A stretch of 64,000 bases of DNA. Source: Macrostomum lignano (taxonomy: Eukaryota). A program made the position numbers and the translations under genes. The notes under the pieces are model-generated. The model made no database searches and had not been told where the DNA came from. It saw only the letters and a program-made list of their open reading frames with translations. Below are positions 1,888-61,681 of the stretch, in pieces. Location: positions 470,737-534,736 of the forward strand of contig NIVC01000567.1 in assembly GCA_002269645.1 (NCBI GenBank). The letters are read 5' to 3'. Numbering within the stretch: position 1 is the stretch's first letter; each line of letters starts with the position of its first letter.

Positions 1888-11639
<9,752 letters not shown>

Positions 11640-13171: not shown

Positions 13172-16100
13172 ATGTCCACTGCAACAACCGACACAACCCA
13201 GACGCCGAAGACTCGCGTCCTTAGCAACCGCTACCGCGTGGTTCGCCAAATTGGCAAAGGCGCTTTCGGCACGGTGCACCTTGTTGAAGATTTGCGCAGC
13301 TCGGAAGAGAAATTCAAAGTGCTGAAAGAAGTTCAAATTGGTGAAGTTGACCCGGATGAAACTCTGGAAGTTGTGCACGAGGCCAAGCTGCTTGGAAAGC
13401 TTGATCACTCAGCTATTCTGAAGTTTTACAATTGTTTTATGGGTAGGTTGGCTCATTAAGTATTTGTTTTCCTTTAAAAACAACTTTTCCCTGAAAAAAG
13501 ATTGGGATTCCTCGTGGCAGTAAATTTTACAAACCGGTGGCCTTGAAATCGGGATTCCCGTTGAGCAATCTTTTAAATAGGATTTCCTCGCCATTCAGTA
13601 GCATGGAAAGTGAGATTTTTCATTTGATGACATTATGGGTGGACTTTTCCATTAAGTGACCTTGAAAGTGAGGATTCCCTTTTGAGTGAAATTAAAAGTA
13701 GCTAAGGATGGATTTTCGCTGTGTCCCTGAAAGTACGAGCCAGGATTTCCCGCTAAGTGACCTTGAAAGTACGATTTTCCGTCGAGCGACCTTGGAATCA
13801 GGAATTCCGTTGCGCGACCTTAAAAGTAGGATTCCCCGTTGAGCGACCTTGAAAGTAAAGGCTTTCCAGTAAAGTGACCTTGAAAGTAAAATTTTCCGGT
13901 AACCGACCTTGAAAGAATATAGGATTTCCTATTAAGCGACCTTGAAAGTATAGGATGGTTTTCACTTGAGTGACCTTGAAAGAAATTTCCGCTTAATACG
14001 TTGAAAATGATTCCGCGTTAAGTGACCTTGAAAGTAGAATTTGACTGTCCACTTGTGGCCTCCGATTTTTATTGATGCTTTTTTCGCCAAAAACAACACA
14101 GAACCGCCGTCGTTTTGCATCGTGACCGAGTACTGCGACGAAGGCGACCTGGACCAGTGCATCAGCCGTCTAAAGCAGGCAGGACACAACCTACCGGTGC
14201 AAACCACCATCCGATGGTTCATTCAAATCCTACTAGGCGTTGACTATTTGCACGGTCGACGGATTTTGCACAGAGATTTGAAAACTAAAAACATATTTTT
14301 GAAAAGTGGTACAGTGAAAATTGGCGACTTTGGTATCTCAAGGGTGCTGATGAGCAACTCCGATATGGCGTCAACTTTTCTTGGCACGCCGTACTTTATG
14401 AGTCCGGAACTGCTCAAACATGAGGGTGAGCTGGGGAGGTCTGCGGCATGCCATCTACTTCCCCATTCATTCTCTATTCTACCTCTATTCTTTCTCTATT
14501 CTCACTCCCTTCATTCTCTATTCCCACCTCCCTTCATTCTCTATTCTCACCTCCATTCATTCTCTATTCTCACCTCCATTCATTCTCTATTCTCACCGTT
14601 ATTCATTTTCTATTCTCACCCCCATTCATTCTCTATTCTCACTCCCATTCATTCTCTATTCTCACTCCCATTCATTCTCTATTCTCACTCCCATTCATTC
14701 TCTATTCTCACTCCCATTCATTCTCTTTTCTCACCTCCACTAATTCTCTATTCTCACTCCCATTTATTCGCTATTCTCACCCCCACTAATTCTCTATTCT
14801 CACTCCCATTCATTCTCTTTTCTCACCTCCACTAATTCTCTATTCCCACCAGTGTTGGGCAAGTTACTCAAAAAAAGTAACTTGCGTTACTGTAACTTAA
14901 GTTACCACTTTTTAAAAAGTAACTTACGTTAGCCTAGTAACTTTGAACAAAAACCCGGTAACTTTTAAGTTACTTCCGTTACTTACTTCCGTTACCTATG
15001 TTATTAACAAAATTTTCTGCTTTTTTTAACATTGCAAATGTGATGGAACAGCACAAATGATCGCGAAAGCCAGGAGGAAGAATACAACAACATTAATTTC
15101 AGTAACTGTATTAAATTTTAATCACTTTAGGCCCTTTCCGTAAAAAGAAGAGAAGCTGAAGGTCAGAAACGTTAAAGGCAAAACGCAATTTAATTTTTAA
15201 TAACATTATAAGTTATAATACACAAGGACAACTTAACGTAACTTCAGTTGTCCTTGATAATACATCGCTCGTAATAAGTATCTGGCTTTACTCCACTCTA
15301 CAGTCTGCTTTACTAGTATTTTTATTTATTTTCAATTATTATCATTAATATTAAATTATTGTGCAGTGCAGTGCAGTGCCAGTGGACTTTAGTGGTGTAG
15401 CCAGGGAGGCCGCCTTAACAATCGTTGGGGCGGCAACTTCACCCCACCTGCAAGACACCCCACCTGGGGGGGTGGGGTTGGGCGTGGCGGGTACCAAAAA
15501 CCATGAGGCGATTTGAGTGCCTGCGGCGCTTAAATGAGTGCCTGCGGCGCTTAAATAAGTGCTTGCGGCGCTAAAATGAGTGCCTGCGGCGCTAAAAGTG
15601 GCAATAACATGAGGCATGGCCAGCCAGGCCAACCCGCCCCCCCCCAATTAAAATTCCTGGCTACGTCGATCACTGAGTGGATTTGTGGAGACTACAGATG
15701 AATTTCTTTCTTTGGTTGTTTGTTTCTAAGAACTAAACAAAATATTTTTATTAACTTAAAAACGAAAAGCAAAAATATTTTACCGAAAATAACAAAGTAA
15801 AAACATGTTTCAAGTATTTCTTTATTAATTACAGCGTAATACCGTATGATATTATTCACTTAGTTTTGAATTTAGGAATGAAAAATGCTAAAAATGTGAC
15901 AACTGGCGTAATAGCTAAGCATATCAGTTTTAAATTTAAATATTGCGATTGTTGCAAAGTAACTGTAACGGACTTCCGAAATTTGAGTAACTTACCGTTA
16001 CTCCGTTACCAAAATAGGAAAGTAACTTGCGTAAGGAACGCTTTACGAAAAAGTAACTTGCGTTACCATTTACAAGTTACTCGGTAACGGAAGTGCCCAA

Positions 16101-19100
16101 CACTGATTCCCACTCCCATTTATTCTCTATTCTCACCGTTATTCATTTTCTATTCTCACCCCCATTCATTCTCTATTCTCACTCCCATTCATTCTCTATT
16201 CTCACTCCCATTCATTCTCTATTCTCACTCCCATTCATTCTCTTTTCTCACCTCCACTAGTTCTCTATTCCCACTCCCATTTATTCTCTATTCTCACCCC
16301 CACTAATTCTCTATTCTCACTCCCATTCATTCTCTATTTCCACCTCCATTAATTCTCTATTCTCACCCCATTCATTCTCTATTTCCACCTCCATTAATTC
16401 TCTATTCTCACCCCATTCATTCTCTTTTCTCACCTCCATTCATTCTCTATTCCCACTCCCATTCATTCTCTATTCTGACTCCCATTCATTCTCTATTTCC
16501 ACCTCCATTAATTCTCTATTCTCACCCCATTCATTCTCTTTTCTCACCTCCATTCATTCTCTATTCTCACTCCCATTCATTCTCTATTTCCACCTCCATT
16601 AATTCTCTATTCTCACCCCATTCATTCTCTTTTCTCACCTCCATTCATTCTCTATTCTCACTCCCATTCATTCTCTATTTCCACCTCCATTAATTCTCTA
16701 TTCTCACCCCATTCATTCTCTTTTCTCACCTCCATTCATTCTCTATTCTCACTCCCATTCATTCTCTATTTCCACCTCCATTAATTCTCTATTCTCACCC
16801 CATTCATTCTCTATTTCCACCTCCATTAATTCTCTATTCTCACCCCATTCATTCTCTTTTCTCACCTCCATTCATTCTCTATTCCCACTCCCATTCATTC
16901 TCTATTCTCACTCCCATTCATTCTCTATTTCCACCTCCATTAATTCTCTATTCTCACCCCATTCATTCTCTTTTCTCACCTCCATTCATTCTCTATTCTC
17001 ACTCCCATTCATTCTCTATTTCCACCTCCATTAATTCTCTATTCTCACCCCATTCATTCTCTTTTCTCACCTCCATTCATTCTCTATTCTCACTCCCATT
17101 CATTCTCTATTTCCACCTCCATTAATTCTCTATTCTCACCCCATTCATTCTCTTTTCTCACCTCCATTCATTCTCTATTCTCACTCCCATTCATTCTCTA
17201 TTTCCACCTCCATTAATTCTCTATTCTCACCCCATTCATTCTCTTTTCTCACCCCATTCATTCTCTATTCTCACTCCCATTCATTCTCTTTTCTCACCTC
17301 CACTAATTCACTATTCCCACTCCCATTTATTCTCTATTCTCACCCCCACTAATTCTCTATTCTCACTCCCATTCATTCTATTCTCACCTCCATTCATTCT
17401 CTATTCTCACCTCTATTCATTCTCTATTCTCACCTCTATTCATTCTCTATTCTCACCTCTATTCATTCTTTTTTCTCACCTCCATTCATTCTCTCTTCTC
17501 ATCCCATTCATTCTCTATTCTCACTCCCATTCATTCTCTACTCTCACCCAAATTCATTCTCTATTCCCACCCGCCCCGACCTGTTCCAGGCTACAACGCC
17601 AAAAGCGACATTTGGAGTGTCGGCTGCATTCTATACGAGATGTGCGCCCTGGAGCACGCATTCAAAGGCGCTGGTCTGATGGGGATTCTATTCAGCATCT
17701 GTGGCAACCCCTGCCCGGTGATCCCAGACCGCTACCCTCCCGAGCTGCAGGCGGTTCTGGAGAAGATGCTAGCCAAAGATCCGCAGGACAGACTCAGCGC
17801 CAGAGAGGTGCTCAAAGAGCCGTTCGTACGCGAGCAGATGCAGAGCCTGCGCGAGGCTGTTGAGTCTCAGAGCGGCGGCAACCGGCAGCAGCAGCTGCTG
17901 ATGGAGGAGACAATTAACGAAGCCGCAAGCAAAAACCTACTATCCGTGCTGCAGGAGAAACCAACGCTCAACAGTCTGGAGTTCGAATCCCGAGCGATGG
18001 CGGCGGCCGCAGCGGCTGCCGCTGAAGTCACTCTGAAGCCCAACAGCGACACGGTCCGGCAGAAGGTCAAGGGACCCGGCCAGGCCGGTGGAGACTTCAA
18101 TGCCCTCAGCCCGCACCAGAAGATGCTGTTGCGAAAGCAACGCGAGGCAGACGACCGCGCCAGAGAGCTGGCCACACAGGCCGCCGAGACGAGCCGTAGA
18201 AACGCCGAGCTGGCTAAGAAGTTCGGCAATCGGACTTTTCGACCGAGCGGCAGCGAAGGCAGAACGGCGTTTCCTCAGCCGCAAGACGACCTGCCAGTGC
18301 GGAACCAACGCTTCTTGGAGGAGCAGCAGCAGCAGAGGCAACAGCAGAAGCACACCGCTTGGGAGTCGCATGACTACGAGCCTCGCCACAATGAAGGTCG
18401 CCGAGATTCTGAAGAAGACTATTACGGCAATGACGGGGATGACAGCGACGAGGAAGACGATCTGGTGCCTGCCAGTCTGGCTCGACGGCAGCCGACTCGG
18501 CCAACTGCCGTGGCTTCAAGCAGAGACGAGCGGCCCATCACGCCGATGAAAATTGACCTCTATCAGCAGATGAATCGGGCTGGCAGTTTTAAAGAGGCCG
18601 CCATGGAGAATGAAGAGCTGGCTGACACCTACTATCAGGTGCTGGACTAATTTTGATTTTAGTCACTTTATATAGCATAGCATAGAATAGCATAGAACTT
18701 TATAGCGTAGAATTATTGGTGATAAGTCATAGAGATATGAAATCGACACTCCCCCAAAATTTTTAGAAAATCGGCAGAAAATTTTCGATAGTTTCCAAAT
18801 ATGTACAGGACCTGTCGCGACTGTCTTAGTCATTTTTTAGTTCATCTGCACTTGTCTCTGTTTACTCTGTTTTCTCTCCGTATCTGTCTGGTTCAGTCTT
18901 GTTATTTTTCTCTCTCTCTATCCCTCGCTGCCTTCTGATTGGCTCTTCAATCTCGCCTCCTTGTCTTATCTACAAAGGGGGGGTGGAGTGCGCGATTGAG
19001 GAAAGAGACGAGATTGAAGAGCCAATCAGAAGGCAGCGAGGGATAGAGAGAAAAAATAACAAGACTGAACTAGATAACAGAGAGGGAGAGATAACAGAGT

Positions 19101-20111: not shown

Positions 20112-20261
20112 GAGCATAACTGCGGGCTTGTGCTGACAGCATAACTGCGAGTCTTCTGCTGCCGCATCCATCACTGCTGGGCTGTGCGGCTCTTCGCTGC
20201 CTGCCGCTTCATGTTTGATAATGTACTCATTTTGTTAATCTGCTTTTAGTTTCAGTTCTGA

Positions 20262-21305
<1,044 letters not shown>

Positions 21306-22313
21306 AATCAGTCGCCTTCAACCGGAGTCTTCATTCCTCTCTGTGACTTGAAATTTGCTCCGACAGCACAGAACCAGTTTTCTTACTGTTTTTGTGTGTC
21401 TCCAAGGATTTCAGAATACTAGCTGTTTCACAATTTCCTTTCATTGGCACCAACTTTTTTATTGTTTTTAGCAAGCAATCAGTTCACATGCTGATAGTAG
21501 TGTAAATTGTGTTTGTTTTAATATTTGATATGTATCGAAAGTTGATTAGCCAGTTAGACGGACAACACAGATAATCCCGATATTAAACCGTTTGATGTGA
21601 CTCTGAACATTATCACAAAGACTGTTTTGTTTTGTTATAGCAATGGTCTCCAGTGTCAAGTTTTAAGTGCAGTTTATTCTGCGACGCCATCTATATCTAT
21701 ATTTACCAGAATGAGATAAGTTAAAAGTGCACTGAACTGCCGTTAACTGTGTGTAATAATTTTGAATATAATTTGCAAAGGAATCAACCATTTTTCCATT
21801 GCTACTTGTCAAACTCAAGTTTTCGATTTGAACGCATTCATAAAAGTGTTATAAATATAACAAAATCGTCATCTTTTCGGTCCAAAAAGTCGTTCGACTG
21901 TAAATTATTGAAACTCATTAAAGAGACCTAAAATATAGGCAAATTTACTTATTTACCTTTGTGAAGTGTAAATTTGTTTTTGATTGATTAAGCAGTGAAC
22001 CAAAAAAGTGTCTGTGGGGCTAAAGTTAGAATTAAAATTAAATTAAATTAAAGTACAGGTAAGCAGATGAAAAACAATTAAAGCCTGAATGTTACGCATT
22101 GGGTCATACGTTTTTTTAAATTTCACTGCCAGAGCTCTTCCGATCTACCAGTATGTACAATTGTACATGTATGTATGTATATGTACCTGCTACTTAAACT
22201 GCTTATACTAACTACCTAATAAATCGTACAATTTTTATAGTATCAACAGAAAAAATGTGATAAATTACCAGCATATGTCTGTGTTAGCGAGCGACAGCCC
22301 ATCGCTCTCGCAG

Positions 22314-25302
22314 TCACGATGAGGCACTCAGGAACCTGTGCCGAAGCAGCTCCGCAGTGTCCGCTCGCTTCCTCGGGTCATAGTCTACGCACCTGAGGTA
22401 GAAGTCCTTCAGGCCGGCTGAGAACCCGTCCGCAATCCGAGGCATCTCCTGCCTTCTATCCCTCAGAATGCCAATATTTACACTTGGCTGGTTCCTATCA
22501 GGAGGCTGCATGGCCGTCATCTCAAACACCGTGCAGCCGAAGGCCCACACGTCGGTCTTGGCTGAGTATGGAAGCGATTGGACTTCTGTGTCGAACAGCT
22601 CCGGAGCTATGAAGTAGGTGGTGCCTTTTGGACCGAAGCCTGTGCTCAGACCGCTGCTCTTCCCGACCTCCTTGGCCAAACCGAAGTCGATCAGCTTGAT
22701 GACGCCCTCGTTGGTGAGCATCACGTTGTTGCAGTTTATATCCCGGTGCAAGATGGCGCCCTCCAGATTGCAGTGCAGGAAGTTTAGACCTGAGCAGATC
22801 TGCAGATAAAGTTGCAACTATTAATTTTGGATGCCAACAAACTGATCCCACACTGATCCCACACTGATCTCACACTGATCCCACACTGATCCCTCACCGA
22901 TTCCACACTGATCCCAGGCTGATCCCACACTGATCCCACACTGATCCCACACTGATCCCTCACCGATTCCACACTGATCCCAGGCTGATCCCACACTGAT
23001 CCCACACTGATCCCACACTAATCCCATACTGATCCCACACTGATCCCACACTGATCCCACCCATTCCAGGCAATGCCAGGGAACCCAGAGACGCACCTGT
23101 CTGGAGAAGTCCCTGACCCCGGACTCCTTGAACGGCTTGTTCTGACGCTGCATCAGCTCAAAGAGGCTGTGACCCGAGACCAGCTCGGTGAAGATGTACA
23201 GCCCATCCGACTTCTGCTCGCACTTGAGGAACTGCACAATGTTGGGATGTGAAATTCGCTTGAGGATCTCAACTCCCCGCTTCTCCATCAGAATTATCTT
23301 CAGTTTCCCTGCAGCTTGCCTCGCATGGCTCAGTGGTAATTTTTTGACAGCCACCGTCTGGTTGCGGTCTGTGAGAGCCTTGTACACCTTGCCGAATCCA
23401 CCACGGCCGATGAGCTGCTTCTTGTTGTCCTGCCGGATGAAGTCCCAGTCGGTGAAGTTGGGGTCCAGCTGCTTCCTGACGCTGAGAACATGAGGTGAAG
23501 GAATTCGTTAAATTTTGTGTGGCTTGGGGCTTTCTGAGTACTTTGGAGTCACTCAGCCTTCTGCGTCACCACCCTTCTGCGTCCCCACCATTCTGCGTCA
23601 CCATATTTTAAGCGCGGACTCACCGAGTCTCCTCAGGCGGTTCCACCTCGGATGCCGAAGTCGGTCCAGGCGGCGGCTCGACGCGGTCCCGAGCTCGCGG
23701 GCGGGGACGCGGAGCTGCAGCTCTGTGGGGGCGAATGAGGGAAAATGTATGAGGGATTTTGCTAAATTTGTACTTAAATTCGACCTGAGTACGATGACTT
23801 AAATGACTTAAAGAGTAGAATGAAAGTATAACGATCTTTAAGCTACTCAAAATTTACTTGATCACTTTCTCCACTCGTTCTCTGGCTGCTGACAAATTAA
23901 ATGCTTTGTAGAAGTTCTCAGTCAGGACTCACCCAGCTGAGGCGGCAGTCGGCGCTGAGCTGCCAGCGGGAGGCCGAGAGGCTTCGAGCCGCCGCTGCGT
24001 GGAGGAAATCCAGGCCCGCTTTGCTGACCGGTCTGTGTAGCACCGCCGACTCTCAACAGCATCAGCCGGTGTTCTGCCCCACATGTTCATCAAGCTGAAC
24101 ATTTCGGCTCCGATTTGGTCAAAAATGAACTGAAGAGAGTCGACTGGCTGATGCTGAGCGGCCCAATGGACGACCGTGTCACCGTCTTTGTCAGGAACTG
24201 TGAGACAGTCGTTGCCGAGCTCCTTCACCAGCCACTTCAGATTTGAATTGTCAGAATTCATTGTAGCAATGTGAAATGCTGTTCTATCCCAGAATCCTTT
24301 CAGCCGAAAGCAGTCAGTTCCGATCTGTTTCTTGATCCACTCCAGCGACTCGACGCCCTGATGTATAGCGGTCAAATGGACGGCCGTGCTACCGTATCTG
24401 TCAGGAACTGTGAGACAGTCGCTGTCGAGCTCCTTCACCAGCCACTCCAAATTTGAACCTTCAGACTTCTGAGCAGCAAAATGAAATGATGCTGTACCAC
24501 TGTTTGACTTTAGCCGAAAGCAGTCAGTTCCGATCTGTCTCTTGATCCACTCCAGTGACTCGATGCCCTGATGCTTCTTGGCAAAATGGACGGCCGTGTC
24601 ACCGTCTCTGTCAGGAACTGTGAGACAGTCGCTGCCGAGCTCCTTCACCAGCCACTCCAAATTTGAATTGTCAGACTTCTGAGCAGCAATGTGAAATGCT
24701 GTTCTATCACTCTTTGTCTTTAGCCGAAAGCAGTCAGTTCCAATCTGTCTCTTGATCCACTCCAGCGACTCGATGCCCTGATGCTGAGCGGCCAAATGGA
24801 CCGCCATGTTACCATCTTTGTCAGGAACTGTGAGACAGTCCCTGCCGACTTCCTTCACCAGCCACTTCAGACAAGAGTTGCTTTTTCTGTTCCCAGCGGC
24901 AAAGTGAGCGACTCTCTTTCCCCATCTATCGACAATTCTCAAGCAACCTCGGCCTCCCTTCTCTTTAACCAGCTTCATCCAAGACTCGTCCTGATGCTGG
25001 GCTGCTAAGTGAACTGGAGTCTCACCCCTATCATTTCTGAATTTCAGACAGTCGGGTCCGAATCTGTCAATCAGCAGCTCCAGGCACGACGAACTCACCG
25101 GCTTGCAGGCCACGTGATGGACCAGCGGCATTTTGCGAAGCTCTTCAAAAGGAAAGTCTTGCTTGTCGAACCCGCCCACCTCCAGCTCGATGTTGCTGCC
25201 GACCTCACCGCACAGTCGCTGCAGCTCCTCGCTGTCTCCAGCCTCCAGTGTCGCTCTGAGCTTCCGCTCCATCTCCATGGATACACTCCAAGCGTTCCCC
25301 AT
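22314..25302 (-). CDS. Ankyrin-repeat + MAP3K19/STE11-like kinase-domain protein, copy 1 (779 aa; 10 ANK repeats)
   Basis: Exons 23933-25302, 23624-23722, 23097-23481, 22314-22799 (phases 2,2,0; stop TGA 22314-22316). 35-aa ANK repeats (e.g. DGNMAVHLAAQHQGIESLEWI). Kinase motifs GRGGFG, VAVK, HPNIV, HRDINCNN, IKLIDFG, APE, KTDVWAFGCTVFEM. Confidence 0.85.
22845..23062. repeat. 11-bp minisatellite (actgatcccac) in ankyrin-kinase copy 1 intron 3
   Basis: Homologous, longer array in copy 2 at 35078-35520. Confidence 0.93.
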
Positions 25303-25780
25303 GCTGGCTTCTCCTAGCAGCGCTTCTCTGCCGATCTTCTGTCTGCCGCAGCTGTTCCACACGGCTTCAGACTGAGTGCTTTGCTCTTCTTCAAGCGAAT
25401 TTGCCTGCCAGCTCAGCAGCAGCAGAAAAAGTCCCGCTGTCACGGACTGAAATCTCTGAGCTCTCCCTGTGCAGAGAAATTTGTTTAAATGGAGTTAAAC
25501 AATGAGAGCTCACTGTGGCTGCGTGCTCGGCATAGCAAGTGCATTGTCAGTGGGCAGGGGTGAAGGGACGGCAGCTGAGACACGAGGGGAGAGAGAGATG
25601 GAGAGGGGAGGGAGGGCAGGGCTGAGGCCTTGATTCAAGCAGAGTTCTGTGATCATTTTCAATTTAGTTTGCAGATGAGATGCATGGCAAATATTTTTCT
25701 GAAAATGCTTGACTGAGGATTTTTCTGTTGCTGAATTCAAATGAAAGGAAAATTCCGCTTGGGTTTGCCACTGACACTTT

Positions 25781-26240
25781 ACATCAGTATCTAACAGGTG
25801 AAAGCAGTATCTAACAGGTGACATCAGTATCTAACAGGTGACATCAGTATCTAACAGGTGACATCAGTATCTAACAGGTGACATCAGTATCTAACAGGTG
25901 ACATCAGTATCTAACAGGTGACATCAGTATCCAACACGTGACATCAGTATCTAACAAGTGACGTCAGTATCTTACAGGTGACATCAGTATCTAACAGGTG
26001 ACATCAGTATCTAACAGGTGACATCAGTATCTAACAGGTGACATCAGTATCTAACAGGTGACATCAGTATCTAACAGGTGACATCAGTATCTAACAGGGG
26101 ACATCAGTATCTAACAGGTGACATCAGTATCCAACACGTGACATCAGTATCTAACAGGTGACATCAGTATCTAACAGGTGACATCAGTATCCAACACGTG
26201 ATATCAGTATCTAACAGGTGACATCAGTATCTAACAGGTT
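25781..26240. repeat. 20-bp minisatellite (gacatcagtatctaacaggt), array 1
   Basis: About 23 copies. Confidence 0.96.
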
Positions 26241-26599
26241 GCCGGGCTCTTCTGCTAATATTTTATGTAATTTTCGTTTGAATTTGATTGTAAAAATTAC
26301 AATTCCGAGTTAGACAAAGCGAAATAAATATTGCAGGAGTAATGGCAATTCAAGTAATAAATATTAGAGGAAAGGAGGACAGAAGTAGAAAGTACTCGCA
26401 AAAAGAGCTGGAGACAGGTGTCAAAGTAAATCAATTTTAAGCAATTGAAAAAATTAAAACAATTCAACAATACAAATGAAAAATGATTACTAATACAAAT
26501 ATTTTAGAGGTGTAAAAAACTGTTTACGCGCTACAGTGCAAAGAGGAATATGGGATGATTAGCCAAACAAATAATATAAGTGGGGTATTTTTCATTGTA

Positions 26600-27760
26600 G
26601 TCAGTATGAGTCTTGAAAGAGGCAATGTTTGGGAAGCTGGGAGGAGGCCTATATCCCCAGCGAGGTCCTGAGATCAATATTTCAAGTTATTCATGGCTCT
26701 TTTGAGTTTGGTGGTAGCAGGGACTCTATGGTCGGCGGCCTGCTCCAATCTTTGAGGTCAAAGCTATGGAACCCTTTTGTGACTTTTTTATGCCATATTT
26801 TAACCAGGATCCATATTCCCTCTTTAAACCTGGGCATCTTGCTGGAATCATGCAGTAAGTAGCTGATTTTAGTGTACTTAGGCGCATCAAGGGAAATCCT
26901 GAGCTCCTGGTTTTGGAGGACCTGAAGTTAATTATGAAGTATGTAATGCCGCTCTCAGTGTAAGACCCGTGAATCAGTCTGAGCGCAAGTTAAGTTGGGC
27001 GATCCTGGTACTCCGAGCGATCCTTCTTATTGAGTTGAGCCTGGGCATTGTGATGCCAGCCGTTCTGGATAAAGTTGAGTACATCTAGGAAGACAGCAGA
27101 ATCAAAGTATTGGATGTCTTCCTGACCAGGTTTGATGGACGGCTTATCAAGACCTGTGATGTGCGTGATTTCCTTTAAACTTAAAGAGACAGGCTTGCTT
27201 TTCGCTGGATTGATAGTGATGCAAACGTCACCCAGCCATTTTTTCTATGTGATGAAGCAGCCATTGAGTCTCTATCGAGCTGACAAGCACAAGGAAGAGG
27301 AGTCGAGACAACACCCCACCTTGAGAGGAACGCCAGCAGCCGACTTGAAGGCTTCGCTGACAGCTCCACCTACCTGAATTCGAATTCCCTGTCGTCAAGG
27401 TAACTGGAAACTATATTCTGACCAATGTTGTGAGGAATGTCACATTCGAGAATCCTTTGCCTAAGATAGCTAGCAGCATGCCAGACGCCATCAAAGACGC
27501 ATAGTGACGTCAATGGTATTGTTTTTAAGCCTGGAGTATTTCCAGCACATCATCTGAGAGTCGCAATATGTTGTCGAATGTACAATGGTCTGCATTGATT
27601 ATTCCTTTGTTTTCAATTATGATTAGCAGATTTCTTGCAATTACCTTTTCATAGAGTTTACACAGGCAAGAGGCTAAACTAATTGGTCTGTAGCTAATTA
27701 TGTCAGTAGTAGGATCATTGCGCCCACGGTCATAACCTACCAGCACCTCCACTGACAAAC
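26600..27760 (-). mobile_element. Degenerate non-LTR retrotransposon (LINE) reverse-transcriptase relic
   Basis: YRPISLASCLCKLYEKVI (about 27640-27695) and a frameshifted GVP-QGGVLSRLLF (about 27290-27335) are non-LTR RT motifs; LRISLDAPKYT near 26870-26905; many stops and frameshifts. Boundaries approximate. Confidence 0.7.
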
Positions 27761-28445
27761 TGAGCTACAGAATCCTTATAATATTCTTAGTTCAAATGGG
27801 AATTACACACAAAATTATTGCACTGAAATACCAATCACATTTGATTTCAATTCATTGTCATTCATTGCAAGTTAAAAATTCGGGTGCTATTTGAGCTGAC
27901 AGCATACGAACTTAAGAATGCAATAAAAACTATGACTCGTGCTTTCGACTTCTTAGAAATCTGCCTCCCAGAGTGCTCAAAGCCGAGGCAGCTGAGCATT
28001 GCAGCTGCTGTGAAACCAGGATGTGAAATATTTCTGAATTAAATGAAAAATTCGTGGAAACACGAGCTATGCTGTTTAGTAGAAGACATGATTACATGAT
28101 TGAATCATTGAGTAGACAGTTCTGTACCGAATCACTCTGAGCAAAAGGTTTATATGCCACAAAAATTAAAATAATTGTATTTTAATGGCCATAAATAGGC
28201 TGTCTCAAACGATATCAATCTTAATTATTCAAAATTATACACAAAAGTTCATTTTTCCAGGCGAGTGCCGGCTTTTCTCACCTGCCTGCCGGAACTCGCT
28301 CTCTGCCGAGGCCAGGTAGTCCAACAGAGATTCAAGAATCAAATTGTAATCTTAGGCCCATGAATGAAGCTTAGAGTTAAGATTCTAATCTTAGAAGCAC
28401 AGCTCATCCTATAATAGTACAGCAATTACAGCAATACACAGCCAT

Positions 28446-28846
28446 GACATCAGTATCTAACAGGTGACATCAGTATCTAACAGGTGACATCAGTATCTAA
28501 CAGGTGACATCAGTATCTAACAGGTGACATCAGTATCTAACAGGTGACATCAGTATCTAACAGGTGACATCAGTATCTAACAGGTGACATCAGTATCTAA
28601 CAGGTGACATCAGTATCTAACAGGTGACATCAGTATCTAACAGGTGACAGCAGTATCTAACAGGAGACATCAGTGTCCAACAGGTGACATCAGTATCTAA
28701 CAGGTGACATCAGTATCTAACAGGTGACATCAGTATCTAACAGGTGACATCAGTATCTAACAGGTGACATCAGTATCTAACAGGTGACATCAGTATCTAA
28801 CAGGTGACATCAGTATCTAACAGGTGACATCAGTATCTAACAGGTC
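28446..28846. repeat. 20-bp minisatellite (gacatcagtatctaacaggt), array 2
   Basis: About 20 copies, same unit and orientation as array 1. Confidence 0.96.
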
Positions 28847-28994
28847 ACATCTGTGACAGAAGTTTAACAGACACGTCATGAAGTCAGACTTTGAGACTGA
28901 GACGGCATCCTCGAACAGATTTTTGAGAATGACAAAAGACAAACTGAGCAAATTTGGGGTTCGACTTTAGAGCCTTGCATTGAAGTAATTGACC

Positions 28995-29408
28995 CTTAAA
29001 CTCTCAGCAATTCCCCCATGACCTTTGATCTCTCAGCAATTCCCGCATGACCTTTGACCTCTTAACAATTCTCCCATGACCTTTGATCTCTCAGCAATTC
29101 CCCCATGACCTTTGATCTCTCAGCAATTCCCCCATGACCTTTGACCTCTCAGCAATTCCCGCATGACCTTTGACCTCTCAGCAATTCTCCCATGACCTTT
29201 GATCTCTCAGCAATTCTCCCATGACCTTTGATCTCTCAGCAATTCTCCCATGACCTTTGACCTCTCTGCAATTCCCGCATGACCCTAAAACTCTCAGCAA
29301 TTCCCCCATGACCTTTGATCTCTCAGCAATTCCCCAATGACCTTTGATCTCTCAGCAATTCCCCAATGACCTTTGATCTCTCAGCAATTCCCGCATGACC
29401 CTTGACCT
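28995..29408. repeat. About 28-bp minisatellite (catgacctttgatctctcagcaattccc)
   Basis: About 14 copies. Confidence 0.93.
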
Positions 29409-29469
29409 CTATGTTGTCACAAAGCGTTTTTGAAATTTCTTGAGAATCTTTGAAACTTTCTGGTAATTG

Positions 29470-30290
29470 GTGATAATCCTGTCTGTGATGGTGACAATCC
29501 TGTCTGTGATGGTGACAATCATGTCTGTGATGGTGACAATCCTGTCTGTGATGGTGACAATCCTGTCTGTGATGGTGACAATCCTGTCTGTGATGGTGAC
29601 AATCCTGTCTGTGATGGTGACAATCATGTCTGTGATGGTGACAATCCTGTCTGTGATGGTGACAATCCTGTCTGTGATGGTGACAATCCTGTCTGTGATC
29701 GTGACAATCCTGTCTGTGATGGTGACAATCCTGTCTGTGATGGTGACAATCATGTCTGTGATGGTGACAATCCTGTCTGTGATGGTGACAATCCTGTCTG
29801 TGATGGTGACAATCCTGTCTGTGATGGTGACAATCCTGTCTGTGATGGTGACAATCCTGTCTGTGATGGTGACAATCCTGTCTGTGATCGTGACAATCCT
29901 GTCTGTGATGGTGACAATCCTGTCTGTGATGGTGACAATCCTGTCTGTGATGGTGACAATCCTGTCTGTGATGGTGACAATCCTGTCTGTGATGGTGACA
30001 ATCCTGTCTGTGATGGTGACAATCCTGTCTGTGATGGTGACAATCCTGTCTGTGATGGTGACAATCCTGTCTGTGATGGTGACAATCCTGTCTGTGATGG
30101 TGACAATCCTGTCTGTGATGGTGACAATCCTGTCTGTGATGGTGACAATCCTGTCTGTGACCGTGACAATCCTGTCTGTGATGGTGACAATCCTGTCTGT
30201 GATGGTGACAATCCTGTCTGTGATGGTGACAATCCTGTCTGTGATGGTGACAATCCTGTCTGTGATGGTGACAATCCTGTCTGTGATGGT
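29470..30290. repeat. 21-bp minisatellite (gtgatggtgacaatcctgtct)
   Basis: About 39 near-perfect copies. Confidence 0.97.
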
Positions 30291-30439
30291 GTATTTAGGC
30301 AGTAAGGCATATTTCATGCATATTTCATTTGCAGCAAATGTATGGCTAAACTCCCAATAGCATTTGTCAAGAAAAAAATTTATGGGCAAAAAAATCGCTT
30401 ATGAAGCAGCTAAAAAATAGAATTTCATTCCTTAAGCAT

Positions 30440-30921
30440 GGAAGAAAGGAAGATGGAAAGAGGGAAAAGAGGGAAGAGGGGAAGAGAAGAAGAGGGGAAG
30501 GGGGGAGAGGGGAGGAAGGGAAGAGGGGAAGAGAAAAAACTGTGGAAGCAGCCGCAGCAAAAACAGCAGCAACAGCAAAGAAACACAGCAGCAACAGCGG
30601 AGAAACAAAGCAGCAACAGCGAAAACAGCAGCAACAGCAAAGAAACACAGCAGCAACAGCAAAGAAACACAGCAGCAACAGCAAAGAAACACAGCAGCAA
30701 CAGCAAAGAAACACAGCAGCAACAGCAAAGAAATAAAGCAGCAACAGCAAAGAAATAAAGCAGCAACAGCAAAGAAACACAGCAGCAACAGCAAAGAAAC
30801 ACAGCAGGAACAGCAAAGAAACAAAGCAGCAACAGCAGAGAAACAAAGCAGCAACAGCGGAGAAACAAAGCAGCAACAGCAGAGAAACAAAGCAGCAACA
30901 GCGGAGAAACAAAGCAGCAAC
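30440..30921. repeat. GA-rich tract plus 22-bp minisatellite (acagcagcaacagcaaagaaac)
   Basis: Abuts the donor of the talin-like pseudoexon. Confidence 0.9.
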
Positions 30922-30931
30922 TGAGACACAC

Positions 30932-31320
30932 CTGGCAAAACAACAGACCCTCCCTGTTGCCGAAGCTGACATCCGGCACATCAACGCATTTCTTCTCAAA
31001 GCACTGCTCAATGATGGCCTGTTGCTCTTCTCCATCACCATCAATGTCTTTGTACTTTTGCTTTTGAACAATCAGATCAACATAAGCGCTAATGAGTTTA
31101 GTGATGGAGTCGGCTTCGGAAATCTTATAGCCGTGATTGCTCGGTCAGAGTAGCCGCCAAAATCCAGAGTGAGTCCGTGAACAGTGGCTGCCCATTTCTT
31201 CACAGATGTGAGCGGCCATTTCTTTAGAATTTGTTTGGTCTTCTGGTCTACGCTGCAGACTCAGTGCTTGGATACACCGAATTAGCGGGGCACGAGTTTG
31301 TTCTCAGATGTCAGTTTCTC
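30932..31320 (-). pseudogene. Talin-like FERM F3 (PTB-like) exon, degraded orphan fragment
   Basis: Translates EKLTSENKLVPR*FGVSKH*VCSVDQKTKQILKKWPLTSVKKWAATVHGLTLDFGGYSD[frameshift]...EADSITKLISAYVDLIVQKQKYKD. This aligns by eye with talin EKMKGKNKLVPRLLGITKECVMRVDEKTKEVIQEW..IKRWAASPKSFTLDFGDY..EGEQIAQLIAGYIDIILKK. Stops at 31282-31284 and 31261-31263, frameshift near 31130-31145, flanked by cag acceptor and gt donor. Confidence 0.8.
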
Positions 31321-31340
31321 CTGAGGGGATGAGCACACAG

Positions 31341-31781
31341 ATAGAGACGAGTCCGGGAGTTCAGAACGACATTCTCAAAGCCCTGGCCTGCACCAGAGAG
31401 CCCTGGCTGCTCAATCGCTACCTGCTCTTTACGCTCGATGACGGGAAAATCCGCAGACAAGACGCCACTCTGGTCGTATCGAGCGTGGCCTCGAACCCTA
31501 TGGGCTTGCAGATCATGTGGGACTTTCTCAGAGACAGCTGGTCAAGCATCCAGGCACGGCAGGTCGGCATTTTCTCCTTGGCCCGGTACGCCTCCAGCTT
31601 GGGCGGCTTCAACTCGCCTGAGAGGCTTCGCGAGATCCGGGAGTTCCTGGCTGCCAACTCGAACAGCCTGGCCAGCGCTGTCCGCGCCTTCGACAACGCG
31701 TTTGAGTCGGTGAGGAACAATGTCCGGTGGATGACAGACTGCCTGCCAGCCGTTATGGACTGGCTGAACTCGCAGTCCTAG
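31341..31781 (+). pseudogene. Orphan C-terminal fragment of an M1 aminopeptidase (aminopeptidase N / ERAP1-C domain), reading frame intact
   Basis: ILKALACTREPWLLNRYL, IRRQDA, VASNPMGLQIMWDFLRDSW, ESVRNNVRWM are hallmark M1 aminopeptidase C-terminal motifs; ends in TAG. No catalytic GAMEN/HEXXH exons were found anywhere in the window. Confidence 0.75.
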
Positions 31782-32228
31782 TGCTGAGCGAGTGCTGACT
31801 GGACGATTGAATGCACAACCTCACATTTTATTTGTTCGATTGACCAATTTTACAGCGTCTAAATTGCACTTTTAGAGCACAAGGAACTGGTGGCATTCCT
31901 CACGTAAACGTATAGCCGAGCTTTTGCTGTCGGTAATTCCTGTAGCCTGTAACATAATGCTTTTTCAATTTTACTAAACATTTAAACAAAATTTACCTTC
32001 AAATCAGAGTTACGACGCGATCTTCCACACTAATCTCGACATCGGGTCCGGCCAGATGACCGAAGCTACAAGTATCTCCGACTCGTCCTTTGACGCCCGA
32101 GGTTACGGAAGTTGATCAGGTCGTGTCACAACAATATTCACTTTTATGTGGATAGACTAGTGGCTGAAATTAGCAAAGGTAACTTTGCTAAAAGTCCATT
32201 CAGGCACTGTCAGGCCGAGCTAAACACA

Positions 32229-32538
32229 AGACACAGAGCCAGACACAGAGCCAGACACAGAGCCAGACACAGAGCCAGACACAGAGCCAGACACAGAGCC
32301 AGACACAGAGCCAGACACAGAGCCAGACACAGAGCCAGACACAGAGCCAGACACAGAGCCAGACACAGAGCCAGACACAGAGCCAGACACAGAGCCAGAC
32401 ACAGAGCCAGACACAGAGCCAGACACAGAGCCAGACACAGAGCCAGACACAGAGCCAGACACAGAGCCAGACACAGAGCCAGACACAGAGCCAGACACAA
32501 AGCCAGACACAAAGCCCCAGACACAGAGCCAGACACAA
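32229..32538. repeat. 12-bp minisatellite (agacacagagcc)
   Basis: About 25 copies. Confidence 0.97.
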
Positions 32539-32577
32539 ACGGCTTGGGATAGGCATGCAGATCTGGCTGCATGCCTA

Positions 32578-32770
32578 TCCCTAACAGAAGACTCTCATGT
32601 CTAACAGAAGACTCCCATGTCTAACAGGAGACTCCCATGTCTAACAGGAGACTCCCATGTCTAACAGGAGACTCCCATGTCTAACAGGAGACTCCCATGT
32701 CTAACAGGAGACTCCCATGTCTAACAGGAGACTCCCATGTCTAACAGGAGACTCCCATGTCTAACAGGAC
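32578..32770. repeat. 20-bp minisatellite (ctaacaggagactcccatgt)
   Basis: About 9 copies. Confidence 0.95.
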
Positions 32771-33207
32771 ACAGCCATATCTAACACGCCAAGTGTGCAT
32801 TCAGTCTAAAACCACACCCCCACTCCCACTTCCCACCAAATCCTGTCCAAATAAAAGCAGAAATGCGATTTTATTCACATTTTCCTGCTCAAAACAGCGG
32901 CGCTCCGCTGAGGTGGCTGAGCAGCCCTCATGCCCCGCCATTGTCTCAGTTCAATGCAATGCGAAGCCACTGCAAACACTTATTTATGCACATTGCACAA
33001 TGCACTGAGTGAGCACAGACTCAAGTATCTGCCAGCATCATTGATGCAGCATCAGTTGTTCAAAAGAGACGCACAGAATGGCTGATGCTCGTTCGAACTT
33101 ACTTTTGTGCAGATGAAGCAACCAGCCGCACCACCCAGCCTCCAGGTGAGCAGATTGCTCAGCTGTCCACAGACTTCTCTGCGTCTCTCCGAGCTCGAGT
33201 CTCCCCC

Positions 33208-33221
33208 GTTGCCATGGCAAC
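33208..33221. promoter_or_regulatory. RFX X-box palindrome GTTGCCATGGCAAC
   Basis: Perfect 14-bp palindrome between the ankyrin-kinase copies. Confidence 0.5.
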
Positions 33222-33454
33222 TGGAGCAGCTCTGCAGCGTCTGTGCAGTTAAGGGCTCTGCACATCTCCTGCTCACTGCGTGAGGGGCCGAGCCGTGAGG
33301 CAGCCTCAGACCTCATGACACTCTGCAAGCCCTTTGAAAACAATGGCCAGCTTCACTGCATGCCTGCTTCATCAGCTCTGCCTTCCCCTCCTATTCTGTG
33401 CGTTGCATTGAGTGAGGCTCAGAAATGATGCTGCGAAATACTAAAATATGAAAT

Positions 33455-33878
33455 GGGACACAGCGGGTCACGGCAGGTCAGGACACAGCGGGTCACGGCA
33501 AGTCAGGACACAGCGGGTCACGGCAAGTCAGGACACAGCGGGTCACGGCAAGTCAGGACACAGCGGGTCACGGCAAGTCAGGATACAGCGGGTCACGGCA
33601 AGTCAGGACACAGCGGGTCACGGCAAGTCAGGACACAGCGGGTCACGGCAAGTCAGGACACAGCGGGTCACGGCAAGTCAGGACACAGCGGGTCACGGCA
33701 AGTCAGGACACAGCGGGTCACGGCAAGTCAGGACACAGCGGGTCACGGCAAGTCAGGATACAGCGGGTCACGGCAAGTCAGGACACAGCGGGTCACGGCA
33801 AGTCAGGACACAGCGGGTCACGGCAAGTCAGGACACAGCGGGTCACGGCAAGTCAGGACACAGCGGGTCACGGCAAGC
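33455..33878. repeat. 25-bp minisatellite (caggacacagcgggtcacggcaagt)
   Basis: About 17 copies. Confidence 0.97.
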
Positions 33879-34109
33879 CAAACGGTGTCTGTATATTTAA
33901 CTGAGAACTCTTGAGTAAGCACTGGACTTCCTGCTCCAACAGTTGCTAATAAAAAGTCAGTCCAAAATCAAATACAAAAATCAGAGCCGGAGAAAGCGCC
34001 AAACCAGGAAGCGCCAAACCAAAAATTCTCGGCAACGAAAAATCTGGAGTAGGCATTGAGCAGTCTGAGCAGATTGGGGAAATTATGATTGGCTTTGTGC
34101 CAGAGTTTC

Positions 34110-34465
34110 AGGATAAACAAAACGGCAATCGGATAAACAAAACGGCAATCGGATAAACAAAACGGCAATCGGATAAACAAAACGGCAATCGGATAAACAA
34201 AACGGCAATCGGATAAACAAAACGGCAATCAGATAAACAAAACGGCAATCGGATAAGCAAAACGTCAATTGGATAAGCAAAACGTCAATCGGATAAACAA
34301 GACGGCAATCGGATAAACAAAACGGCAATCGAATAAACAAAACGGCAATCGGATAAACAAAACGGCAATCGGATAAACAAAACGGCAATCGGATAAACAA
34401 AACGGCAATCGGATAAACAAAAAGGGAAACCGGATAAACAAAAGGGCAACCGGATAAACAAAAAC
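34110..34465. repeat. 20-bp minisatellite (ggataaacaaaacggcaatc)
   Basis: About 17 copies, just beyond the stop of ankyrin-kinase copy 2. Confidence 0.96.
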
Positions 34466-34537
34466 AGACAACGTCGGCAAGCGAAACCGCCCGCTTCAAG
34501 AGTCGTTCCGCTCCCTCACAGCCCGTCGCTCTCGCAG

Positions 34538-37500
34538 TCACGATGAGGCACTCAGGAAGCTGTGCCGCAGCAGCTCCGCGGTGTCCGCTCGCTTCCTCGG
34601 GTCATAGTCTACGCACCTGAGGTAGAAGTCCTTCAGGTCGGCTGAGAACCCGTCCGCAATCTGAGGCATCTCCCTCCCTGCGCATCTTAGCACGGCGATC
34701 CTGAACTGCTGAATGTTCGCGTCAGGAGGCTGCATGGCCGTCAGCTCATACACGGTGCAGCCGAAGGCCCACACGTCGGTCTTGGCTGAGTACGGAATCG
34801 AGTCGTCCTCGCCCATGAACAGCTCGGGCGCCAGGAAGTAGGGGGTGCCTTTGGGATCGACGCCTGTGCTCAGGCCGCAGGTGCCGACGATCTCCTTGGC
34901 GAGACCGAAGTCGATCAGCTTGATGACGCCCTCGTTGTTGAGCATTGCATTGGAGCTCTTGATGTCACGGTGCAAGATGGCGCCCTGCGGCTGGCAGTGC
35001 AGGAAGTTCAGGCCTGAGCAGATCTGCAGGTCGAGAAGTTTTGTGTTGTAAATTTGTTAAAATCATAAAATCATTCTGGATCCCACCCACAGTGACTCCA
35101 TACCTGATCCCACACTGATCCCACTCTGATCCCACACTGATGCCACACTAATCCCACACTGATCCCACACTGATCTCACACTGATCCCTCACCGATTCCA
35201 CACTGATCCCAGGCTGATCCCACACTGATCCCACACTGATCCCACACTGATCCCTCACCGATTCCACACTGATCCCAGGCTGATCCCACACTGATCCCAC
35301 ACTGATCCCACACTGATCCCTCACCGATTCCACACTGATCCCAGGCTGATCCCACACTGATCCCACACTGATCCCACACTAATCCCATACTGATCCCACA
35401 CCGATTCCACACTGATCTCACGCTGATCCCACACTGATCCCACACTGATCCCACACTAATCCCATACTGATCCCACACCGATTCCACACTGATCTCACGC
35501 TGATCCCACACTGATCCCACCCATGTCAGGCAATCCTAGAGAACCCAGAGACGCACCTGTCTGGAGAAGTCCCTGACCCCGGACTCCTTGAACGGCTTGT
35601 TCTGACGCTGCATCAGCTCAAAGAGGCTGTGACCCGAGACCAGCTCGGTGAAGATGTACAGCCCATTCGACTTCTGCTCGCACTTGAAGAACTGCACAAT
35701 GTTGGGATGCGAGAGTCGCTTGAGGATCTCAACTCCCCGCTTCTCCATCTCGACGGCTTTCTGCAGCTTCCCCGATTGGCCGGTGCCGCTCAGGGGCAGC
35801 ACCTTGACAGCCACCGTCTGGTTGCGGTCTGTGAGGGCCTTGTACACCTTGCATACGAATCCGCCACGGCCGATGAGCTGCTTCTTGTTGTCCTGCCGGA
35901 TGAAGTCCCAGTCGGTGAAGCTGCAGGAGTCCAGCTGCTTCTTGGCGCTGAAAATATGAGGTGAAGGAATCTGATGAATTTTGTGTGGCTTGGTGCTTCC
36001 TGAGTACTTTGGAGTCCTCAGCCTTCTGCGTCACCACCCTTCTGCGTCACCAGTTTTTGTCACCCACCTTGTGTGTCACCCACCTTGTGTGTCACCCACC
36101 TTGTGTGTCACCCACCTTGTGTGTCACCCACCTTGTGTGTCACCCACCTTGTGTGTCACCCACCTTGTGTGTCACCCACCTTGTGTGTCACCCACCTTGT
36201 GTGTCACCCACCTTGTGTGTCACCCACCTTTTGCGTCCCAGCGCGGACTCACCCAGTCTCCTCAGAAAGTCCCTCCTCGGACGGCCCAGAGGTTAGGGAG
36301 GTCCATAAGGAGGTTAGGGGCGCCATGAGGAGGTTTAGGGCGCCATGAAGAGCTGTCCTGGCAAATCCGTGGTGCCCTCGCTTGACTGCGGCGCTGCTGA
36401 AAATTTCAGGGCGTCGATCATCAAAGCGCAATGAACTTTCGTTATATAACATGTTCAGTATTTTTAATATCATGCAGCAGTTCTCAGTCAGGACTCACCC
36501 AGCTGAGGCGGCAGTCGGCGCTGAGCTGCCAGCGGGAGGCCGAGAGGCTTCGAGCCGCGTGGAGGAAATCCAGGCCCGCTTTGCTGACCGGTCTGTGCGG
36601 CACCGATCACTCTCAACAACATCAACCGGTGTTTCGCCCCTGTTGTTCTTCAAGCGGAACATTTCGACTCCGGTTTGTTCAAAAATGAACTGAAGAGAGT
36701 CGACTGGCTGCTGCTGAGCGGCCAAATGGACGGCCGTGTTACCGTCTTTGTCAGGAACTGTGAGGCAGTCGCTGCCGAGCTCCGTCACAAGCCACTTCAG
36801 ATTTGAATTGTCAGACTTCTGAGCAGCAAAGTGAGACGCTATTGTATTACTCGTTGTCTTCAGCCAAAAGCAGTCAGTTCCGATCTGTCTCTTGATCCAC
36901 TCCAGCGACTCGATGCCCTGATGCTGAGCGGTAAAATGGACGGCCGTGTCACCGTCTTCGTTAGGAACTGTGAGACAGTCGCTGCCGAGCTCCTTCACCA
37001 GCCACTCCAGATTTGAATTGTCAGACTTCTGAGCAGCAAAGTGAAATGCTTTTTCATCACACCAACCATTCAGTCGAAAGGAGTCAGTTCCGATCTGTCT
37101 CTTGATCCACTCCAGCGACTCGATGCCCTGATGCTGAGCGGCCAAATGGACAGCCGTGTCACCGTATTCGTTGGGAACTGTGAGACAGTCCCTGCCGACT
37201 TCCTTCACCAGCCACTTTAGACAAGAGTTGCTTTTTCTGTTCATCGCAGCGAAGTGAGCGACTGTGTGTGCCGATCCATCGGCAAATCCCAAGCAGTCTC
37301 TGGCTCCCTTCTCTTTAACCAGCTTCATCCAAGTTTCGTCCTGATGCAGGGCTGCTAGGTGCACTGGAATCTCACCCCTATCATTTCCATGTGTCAGACA
37401 GTCGGGTCCGAATCTGTCAATCAGCAGCTCCAGGCACGACGAACTCACCGGCTTGCAGGCCACGTGATGGACCAGCGGCATTTTAAGAAGCTCTTTAAAG

Positions 37501-37634
37501 GGATATTCTTGTGTGTCAAAGCCGCCCACTTCCAGCTCGATGTTGCTGCCGACCTCACCGCACAGTCGCTGCAGCTCCTCGCTGTCTCCAGCCTCCAGCG
37601 CTGCTCTCAGCTTCCGCTCCATCTCTGTTGCCAT
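34538..37634 (-). CDS. Ankyrin-repeat + MAP3K19/STE11-like kinase-domain protein, copy 2 (about 718 aa; 8 ANK repeats)
   Basis: Exons 36499-37634, 36253-36396 (acceptor less certain; 36357 also in frame), 35557-35947, 34538-35023. Same exon phases and same intron minisatellite as copy 1. Kinase motifs GRGGFVC, VAVK, HRDIKSSN, DFG, GTPYFLAPE. Confidence 0.83.
35078..35520. repeat. 11-bp minisatellite (actgatcccac) in ankyrin-kinase copy 2 intron 3
   Basis: About twice the length of the copy 1 array. Confidence 0.93.
36025..36232. repeat. 16-bp minisatellite (cacccaccttgtgtgt) in copy 2 intron 2
   Basis: About 11 copies; only 2-3 related degenerate units in the matching intron of copy 1. Confidence 0.93.

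Positions 37635-40872: not shown

Positions 40873-61681
<20,809 letters not shown>

Follow-up and report, generated by a model that had tools for sequence, protein, structure and literature searches.

A tandem pair of ankyrin-array kinase genes in Macrostomum lignano, with repeat variation focused on a predicted binding face

Two neighboring genes on the minus strand of a 64,000-nucleotide stretch of the Macrostomum lignano genome (contig NIVC01000567.1; hereafter the window, in which all positions are counted) encode an array of ankyrin repeats followed by a protein kinase domain. The question raised by this locus is whether the pair belongs to one of the known ankyrin-kinase groups or to a separate family in which the array acts as a variable sensor. 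With moderate confidence, we favor the reading that the window carries two tandem members of a large, Macrostomum-restricted cytoplasmic family coupling a variable ankyrin sensor array to a STE11-type, MAP3K19-like kinase.

The minus strand was read over the stretches 25900-22200 and 38100-34400, and open spliced frames with GT-AG introns were obtained in both genes. The two paralogues are intact, their proteins being approximately 76–78% identical and differing by one 70-amino-acid double unit. The gene 1 product consists of 779 amino acids from four coding exons, the ankyrin array being followed by a split kinase domain. A first-pass annotation of this DNA had described tandem paralogues with single-exon arrays of 35-amino-acid ankyrin repeats N-terminal to a kinase, and Pfam matches, splice sites and open frames all agreed with that description. 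The exons are as follows:

Gene 1 exon 1, 25302-23933, minus strand: 1370 nt with the ATG (MGNAWS...), an N-terminal cap, the complete array of ~10 ankyrin repeats of 35 amino acids and a Ser/Ala-rich tail, ending at a GT donor.
Gene 1 exon 1 domain, 23933-25302, minus strand: Pfam Ank_2, E=1.7e-27.
Gene 1 exon 2, 23722-23624, minus strand: 99-nt Pro/Arg-rich linker (AAAPRPRPRARDRVEPPPGP...), AG/GT boundaries, frame kept.
Gene 1 exon 3, 23481-23097, minus strand: kinase N-lobe (GRGGFGKVYK, TVAVK), Pfam Pkinase profile positions 16-107.
Gene 1 exon 4, 22799-22314, minus strand: kinase C-lobe (HRDINCNN, DFG, APE, DVWAFGCTVFEM) and TGA stop, Pfam Pkinase positions 104-263, E=5.9e-31.
Gene 2 exon 1, 37634-36499, minus strand: ATG (MATEMERKL...) and ~8 ankyrin repeats, Pfam Ank_2, E=7.6e-25.
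Gene 2 candidate linker exon (doubtful, possibly skipped or no longer present), 36396-36253, minus strand: in-frame AG...GT, donor conserved.
Gene 2 exon 3, 35947-35557, minus strand: kinase N-lobe with Gly-loop insertion (GRGGFVCKVYK), Pfam Pkinase.
Gene 2 exon 4, 35023-34538, minus strand: kinase C-lobe (HRDIKSSN, DFG, APE) and stop, Pfam Pkinase, E=1.1e-27.

Ank_2 scored 96 and 88 bits in the two first exons (Pfam cut-off 27.3), with further matches to Ank_4, Ank_5 and Ank, and Pkinase was split across two exons in both genes (E ~1e-12 for the N-lobe, 1e-28 to 1e-31 for the C-lobe). The kinase motifs quoted in the first-pass annotation (LTDRNQTVAVK, NNVML..GVIKLIDFG and DVWAFGCTVFEM) were all found. 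Its count of four exons per gene held for gene 1 and is unproven for gene 2, where the linker exon is doubtful. The database model P0122, which matches gene 2 exactly over the shared exons, joins exon 1 straight to exon 3, and the linker exon, common to gene 1, P0002, P0003 and P0006, is absent in the paralogues P0004 and P0005; gene 2 therefore has three or four coding exons. Neither gene contains a NACHT or NB-ARC NTPase domain, as Pfam yielded Ank and Pkinase only, besides weak sub-threshold chance matches. No transmembrane segment was predicted in the ankyrin-kinase protein. The gene 1 start (MGNAWS) resembles a myristoylation signal, and P0010 starts with MGNTRS; members starting with MGxxxS, such as these two, may be membrane-anchored by myristoylation.

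The ankyrin repeats are 35 amino acids long and alternate between two types, A and B, the unit at the DNA level being 210 bp (one 70-amino-acid double unit). Tandem Repeats Finder (TRF) detected this unit in both first exons:

210-bp tandem repeat in gene 1 exon 1, 24148-24866, minus strand: TRF 3.4 copies, 85% matches, identity between units 66-77% (protein) and 85% (DNA).
210-bp tandem repeat in gene 2 exon 1, 36708-37216, minus strand: TRF 2.4 copies, 88% matches.

Repeat number varied from gene to gene (8, 10, 10, 12, 14 and ~30 among the window genes and their paralogues), gene 1 having ~10 and gene 2 having 8. The array with ~30 repeats lies at 10001-13459 of L006 (from NIVC01000558.1), where the genomic first-exon frame runs to 1153 codons and the annotated protein, P0003, to only 835 amino acids; some of the repeats were seemingly collapsed during annotation or transcript assembly. 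In four paralogues, units of the same gene were 83–88% identical in protein and 91–93% in DNA. Protein identity among units was 87–88% in L001, L005 and L006, 83% in L002, 79% in gene 2 and 73% in gene 1. The criterion applied to repeats of fungal NOD-like receptors (NLRs; NOD, nucleotide-binding oligomerization domain) is a mutual identity of 85% or more across a length of 100 amino acids or more (PMC4986451).

Variation within the array was concentrated at few sites. Across 49 unique double units from 16 paralogues the framework was nearly invariant, and entropy peaked at unit positions 3, 4, 6 and 14 in the A repeat and 37–41 and 49 in the B repeat. Aligned by the conserved Thr, these variable positions correspond to consensus ankyrin positions 2, 3, 5 and 13, at the tip of the beta-turn and the end of helix 1. 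Residues at the beta-turn tip and helix 1 end make up the surface through which ankyrin proteins bind. Between gene 1 and gene 2, the ratio of nonsynonymous to synonymous divergence (dN/dS) was 3.6 at four variable positions per repeat, picked post hoc from the entropy peaks, and 0.56 in the remaining array. Nonsynonymous and synonymous differences (pN and pS) were also counted at the DNA level among 26 unique units drawn from both window genes, L001, L002, L005 and L006 (six genes in all), at ten positions fixed beforehand as those randomised in designed ankyrin proteins:

pN: 0.388 at the fixed binding positions, 0.046 at all other positions.
pN/pS: 1.92 at the fixed binding positions, 0.76 at all other positions.

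None of 20000 random ten-position sets attained a pN of 0.388. This is strong descriptive evidence of diversifying change focused on the predicted binding face of the array. It also agrees with the variable recognition module that had been proposed for this locus, the variation falling on canonical ankyrin binding positions with pN above pS.

The relationships of the kinase were examined with a profile built from eight diverse family kinase domains and with a bootstrapped neighbor-joining (NJ) tree of 30 kinase domains. Reference sequences were taken from the PDB (TNNI3K, ILK) and from the protein database (MAP3K19). Against all solved structures in the PDB, the best 60 matches were all STE kinases with the sole exception of NEK1 (155 bits), the highest scores belonging to SLK (170.5 bits), MAP3K2 (166 bits) and MAP3K5 (163 bits), then to STK25, PAK, MST3, MST4, STK10 and TNIK. 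Single-domain scores against other references, the first three lines giving the best scores outside the family, were:

Unnamed Logan proteins P0293 and P0259: 204.6 and 190.6 bits.
Plant MAPKKK (Digitaria): 200.7 bits.
MAP3K19: 195-199 bits.
Nek5: 135 bits.
TNNI3K: 117 bits.
ILK: 42 bits.

In the NJ tree the family was monophyletic at 92% bootstrap, including the kinases of P0321 and P0331, two M. lignano proteins with the architecture kinase, ankyrin repeats, caspase. In this tree, support for joining the family to MAP3K19 was 3%, and neither the order of the outgroups nor the family's place among STE11 kinases was resolved. The kinase assignment made beforehand, STE11 and MAP3K19-like, holds at the level of sequence similarity (195–201 bits for MAP3K19 and the plant MAPKKK), with MAP3K19 as a best-scoring neighbor and orthology not implied. 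A grouping with TNNI3K or ILK, which the first-pass annotation had named as evidence against its proposal, was seen neither in the profile scores nor in the tree, where both lie apart from the family. On this evidence the family falls outside every known ankyrin-kinase orthogroup, and it is not an NLR family, having no NOD domain.

Two kinase sub-types were distinguished within the family by their motifs: a K-type (TVAVK / HRDIKSSN / DFGLA) and an N-type (TCAAK / HRDINCSN / DFGLS). In the NJ tree both window genes belonged with the K-type (clade support 99%), gene 1 falling beside P0006 and gene 2 beside P0005. The beta-3 Lys, HRD, catalytic Asn, DFG and APE were invariant over eight diverse family members, and dN/dS between the kinase domains of gene 1 and gene 2 was 0.40–0.57. 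In the catalytic loop of gene 1 (HRDINCNN) the Lys is replaced by Asn. The codons concerned (22740-22751, exon 4) are AAG AGC TCC in all K-type paralogues and AAC TGC AAC in gene 1; the AACTGC is common to an N-type gene and reproduces the N-type Asn-Cys, which reflects either a short conversion tract or a parallel change. In gene 2 the Gly-loop carries a 3-nt insertion (GRGGFVCKV) that is also present in the database fragment P0122. Taken over both exons the kinase domain is complete and retains most of the catalytic motifs. Since each window kinase deviates in one such motif, catalytic activity is possibly changed or reduced in both. TNNI3K, which is an active kinase, likewise has Asn at the catalytic-loop Lys position (HRDLNSHN), so the Lys-to-Asn change need not abolish activity.

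Close relatives identified by protein search comprised ~27 M. lignano clusters with ankyrin repeats and kinase (33–89% identity) and ~55 kinase-only fragments. When 1.84 billion representative proteins were scanned exhaustively with HMMER, a single-domain score of at least 230 bits was reached by M. lignano proteins only, with the exception of P0256. This protein is an 877-amino-acid uninterrupted ankyrin-kinase frame on transcript-like contigs of 3.1–3.2 kb from the runs SRR28338163 and SRR28338164 (Logan; L003, L004); it shares 54% identity with M. lignano P0242 and has canonical 33-amino-acid repeats. P0001 is a read-through model of another tandem paralogue pair, which indicates that tandem pairing is found in other parts of the genome too, and other members lie on shared contigs tens of kb apart, so that the family occurs in tandem or loose clusters. 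The proposed lineage-specific expansion is supported by these counts, all of the clusters and fragments coming from M. lignano. P0014 (L007, NIVC01002760.1) is a compact 3.5-kb gene that pairs a window-like ankyrin exon of the 35-amino-acid type with an N-type kinase (TCAAK/HRDINCSN), which suggests exchange of exons or modules within the family.

The NCBI gene models of the M. lignano assembly derive from genome-guided RNA-seq assembly (PMC5730564); for the paralogues, this supports a single transcript bearing both the ankyrin repeats and the kinase. The family proteins are deposited as 'hypothetical protein' or 'Protein kinase domain-containing protein'. No published description of the family was found in searchable papers, where only a caspase paper touches the sister architecture. 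The label 'undescribed' given in the first-pass annotation thus applies to the literature and not to the databases, in which the paralogues are already public as hypothetical proteins.

From its sequence record, the family appears to evolve like a receptor family, and the coupling of a variable sensor to a kinase is a well-motivated inference. The protein is soluble, with an N-terminal ankyrin solenoid tethered to the C-terminal kinase through a low-complexity linker, encoded in part by an optional exon. In the mechanism we envisage, unequal crossing-over and conversion among the 210-bp units would reshuffle a binding surface specific to each paralogue, and a fast-changing partner binding this surface would switch or relocate the kinase. 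Candidates for this role could be non-self molecules, molecules of pathogen origin or an endogenous partner that co-evolves. The kinase might then signal as a MAP3K in a MAPK-type cascade or phosphorylate the bound target itself.

Several observations weigh against this variable-sensor reading. The pN/pS values are pairwise counts over non-independent units undergoing conversion and are descriptive rather than a formal site model, and the variable codons show elevated synonymous divergence as well (0.19–0.20 vs 0.06). Repeats of the window genes are less uniform (73–79% in protein, 85–88% in DNA) than those of the other paralogues, and both genes deviate in a catalytic motif, gene 1 having lost its catalytic-loop Lys and gene 2 having an altered Gly-loop. 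A single transcript with ankyrin repeats and kinase, as the first-pass annotation assumed, is evidenced in relatives (the RNA-seq-derived paralogue models and the P0256 contig) and not in the two window genes. Six paralogue identifiers were not found in the available supplement tables of M. lignano transcriptome papers or in full-text search, and the literature searched gave no expression, ligand or activity data for the family. The likeness to immune receptor-kinases is an analogy. Fast-evolving families in M. lignano are often related to reproduction.

This last point leads to the foremost rival, in which the arrays would bring the kinase to host partners that are diverse or evolve rapidly, germline or sperm signaling being one example, with diversification driven by sexual selection or conflict instead of non-self recognition. 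Elsewhere among animals, kinase families expanded in a single lineage are often expressed in sperm, and fast-evolving reproduction genes are numerous in M. lignano; expansion, clustering and diversification of the binding surface would fit such endogenous targeting too. No supporting expression data were found for it either, and conserved internal repeats that vary in number are best documented in recognition receptors (PMC4986451). In the sister branch the kinase is joined to a caspase, and this favors death or defense signaling over gamete biology. We regard a role of this kind as possible but not probable.

Tentatively, and with no greater confidence, the sensor reading can be extended to a new class of cytosolic innate-immune or non-self receptors in Macrostomum. 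In these, shuffled ankyrin arrays would be wired to a MAP3K-type kinase or, in the sister branch, to a caspase, and would functionally replace NLR/death-domain pathways lost in flatworms. Platyhelminths are reported to lack key components of extrinsic apoptosis (PMC11463336), and for this reason the family and its caspase-fused sister branch are candidates for non-self or danger detection in a regenerating flatworm.

It is unlikely that the expansion is largely neutral, consisting of recent and partly decaying duplicates whose hypervariability reflects relaxed constraint on exposed loops while gene conversion keeps the framework uniform. Such an origin would account for the fairly high dN/dS between gene 1 and gene 2 throughout (0.3–0.7), the unusual catalytic motif in each window gene, the many fragmentary members in the databases and the framework pS lowered to 0.06, as expected from conversion. 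However, the spliced frames are intact in both genes, the catalytic residues are invariant among divergent members, and the catalytic-loop Asn is fixed in a whole sub-clade, recurs in gene 1 and is present in TNNI3K. In addition, relaxed constraint by itself does not yield the ~2–3.6-fold excess of pN over pS seen at the binding positions.

That the pair are flatworm orthologues of TNNI3K or ILK, TKL kinases with which they share the domain order and, in the case of TNNI3K, the catalytic-loop Lys-to-Asn change of gene 1 and the N-type sub-clade, is scarcely credible and was rejected, because these two scored 117 and 42 bits against 195–205 for STE11 kinases, no TKL kinase was among the best 60 PDB matches, and TNNI3K and ILK pair with each other far from the Macrostomum family in the NJ tree. 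Transposon or viral origin and horizontal transfer were set aside in view of the spliceosomal introns, the host-gene neighbors and the lack of any preference for animal over plant among the nearest kinases outside the family.

The surroundings of the pair were also annotated. A tblastn search for a third paralogue within the window found none, only an unrelated NEK-like kinase gene that is ~26–37% identical to the ankyrin-kinase genes over short alignments. It lies upstream on the opposite strand, has motifs HRDLKTKNIFL and GTPYFMSPE, and is made up of the frames 13172-13459, 14041-14835 and 17640-18650, the first two matching Pfam Pkinase and the third no Pfam family. Intron 3 of gene 1 contains an 11-bp microsatellite, and the homologous intron of gene 2 is filled by the same repeat. 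Minisatellites with units of 12–29 bp fill the intergenic region; one 20-mer is arrayed twice (25781-26239 and 28445-28851), and the region is flanked by long tracts of repeats, one frame of which spells (DRQT)n. Repeats were noted at 25781-34463 and also at 10062-10633 and 20252-21422. The features are:

11-bp microsatellite in gene 1 intron 3 (TRF), 22841-23060, no strand.
11-bp microsatellite in gene 2 intron 3 (TRF), 35104-35520, no strand.
Multi-exon NEK-like kinase gene, 13172-18650, plus strand.
Intergenic minisatellites, 25781-34463, no strand.
Short frame YRPISLASCLCKLYEKVIARNL, 27525-27758, minus strand: resembles a non-LTR reverse-transcriptase fragment, with no Pfam match and unconfirmed.
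157-amino-acid frame between the ankyrin-kinase genes, 31308-31781, plus strand: ERAP1-like C-terminal domain of M1 aminopeptidases (E=2e-25), a candidate last exon or gene fragment.
C-terminal domain of phospholipid-translocating P-type ATPases, 43062-43871, minus strand: E=1e-57, an ordinary host gene that lies downstream of the two ankyrin-kinase genes.

Fusions of ankyrin repeats to kinases are known, as are hypervariable repeat receptors. No searchable paper was found to describe a STE11 MAP3K-type kinase fused to an ankyrin array with receptor-like diversification and expanded to dozens of loci within a single animal lineage. M. lignano is amenable to RNA interference, and its transgenesis is established (PMC5730564), so the idea is directly testable in the animal itself by both approaches.

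Among known kinases, MAP3K19/YSK4 and the plant (Digitaria) MAPKKK are the best-scoring named relatives and share HRDIK..N.ML, G.IKLIDFG and D.W..GCTV.EM....PP with the family. MAP3K19, however, lacks an ankyrin array, and its kinase is just ~30–35% identical to the Macrostomum kinases, which form a separate clade (92%). TNNI3K and ILK also have ankyrin repeats N-terminal to the kinase, and TNNI3K has the catalytic-loop Asn of gene 1 and the N-type, but they are TKL kinases encoded by single conserved genes, with canonical 33-amino-acid repeats and no hypervariable array. RIPK4, ANKK1 and DAPK1 are animal signaling proteins that combine a kinase with ankyrin repeats. They differ from the window genes, in which the ankyrin repeats precede the kinase, by having the kinase first, by not being STE11 and by not forming an expanded family, and their kinases were absent from the best 60 PDB matches to the family profile.

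Within M. lignano, the closest comparison is with P0321 and P0331. Their kinases fall inside the family clade (258–263 bits), next to the N-type kinases with 100% support, and ankyrin repeats are present, but the kinase is N-terminal, the effector is a caspase and the 35-amino-acid hypervariable array is missing. P0247 is another M. lignano protein of kinase-ankyrin-caspase architecture with a family-clade kinase, and may be a merged gene model.

In the evolution of their repeats the Macrostomum arrays, compared between paralogues, resemble the fungal NLRs of the HNWD, het-e and het-d type, whose ankyrin, TPR or WD repeat domains combine high internal conservation, variation in repeat number and a diversifying binding face (PMC4986451). 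The arrays vary in repeat number and diversify on the binding face, and their internal protein identity is above 85% in L001, L005 and L006 and below it in L002 and the window genes. Internally conserved repeats of this kind are reported to be rare in metazoans (0.8%; PMC4986451). Unlike the fungal receptors, the Macrostomum proteins have no NOD/STAND NTPase, their output is a C-terminal kinase and their host is an animal.

The flatworm arrays can also be set beside an engineered system. In libraries of designed ankyrin repeat proteins (DARPins), a designed consensus repeat is randomised at positions 2, 3, 5 and 13. The naturally variable positions of the flatworm repeats match these randomised positions, and the framework around them is nearly invariant. 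They differ from DARPins in being natural, 35 amino acids long, alternating between A and B types and fused to an enzyme, and they form a natural counterpart of designed ankyrin binder libraries.

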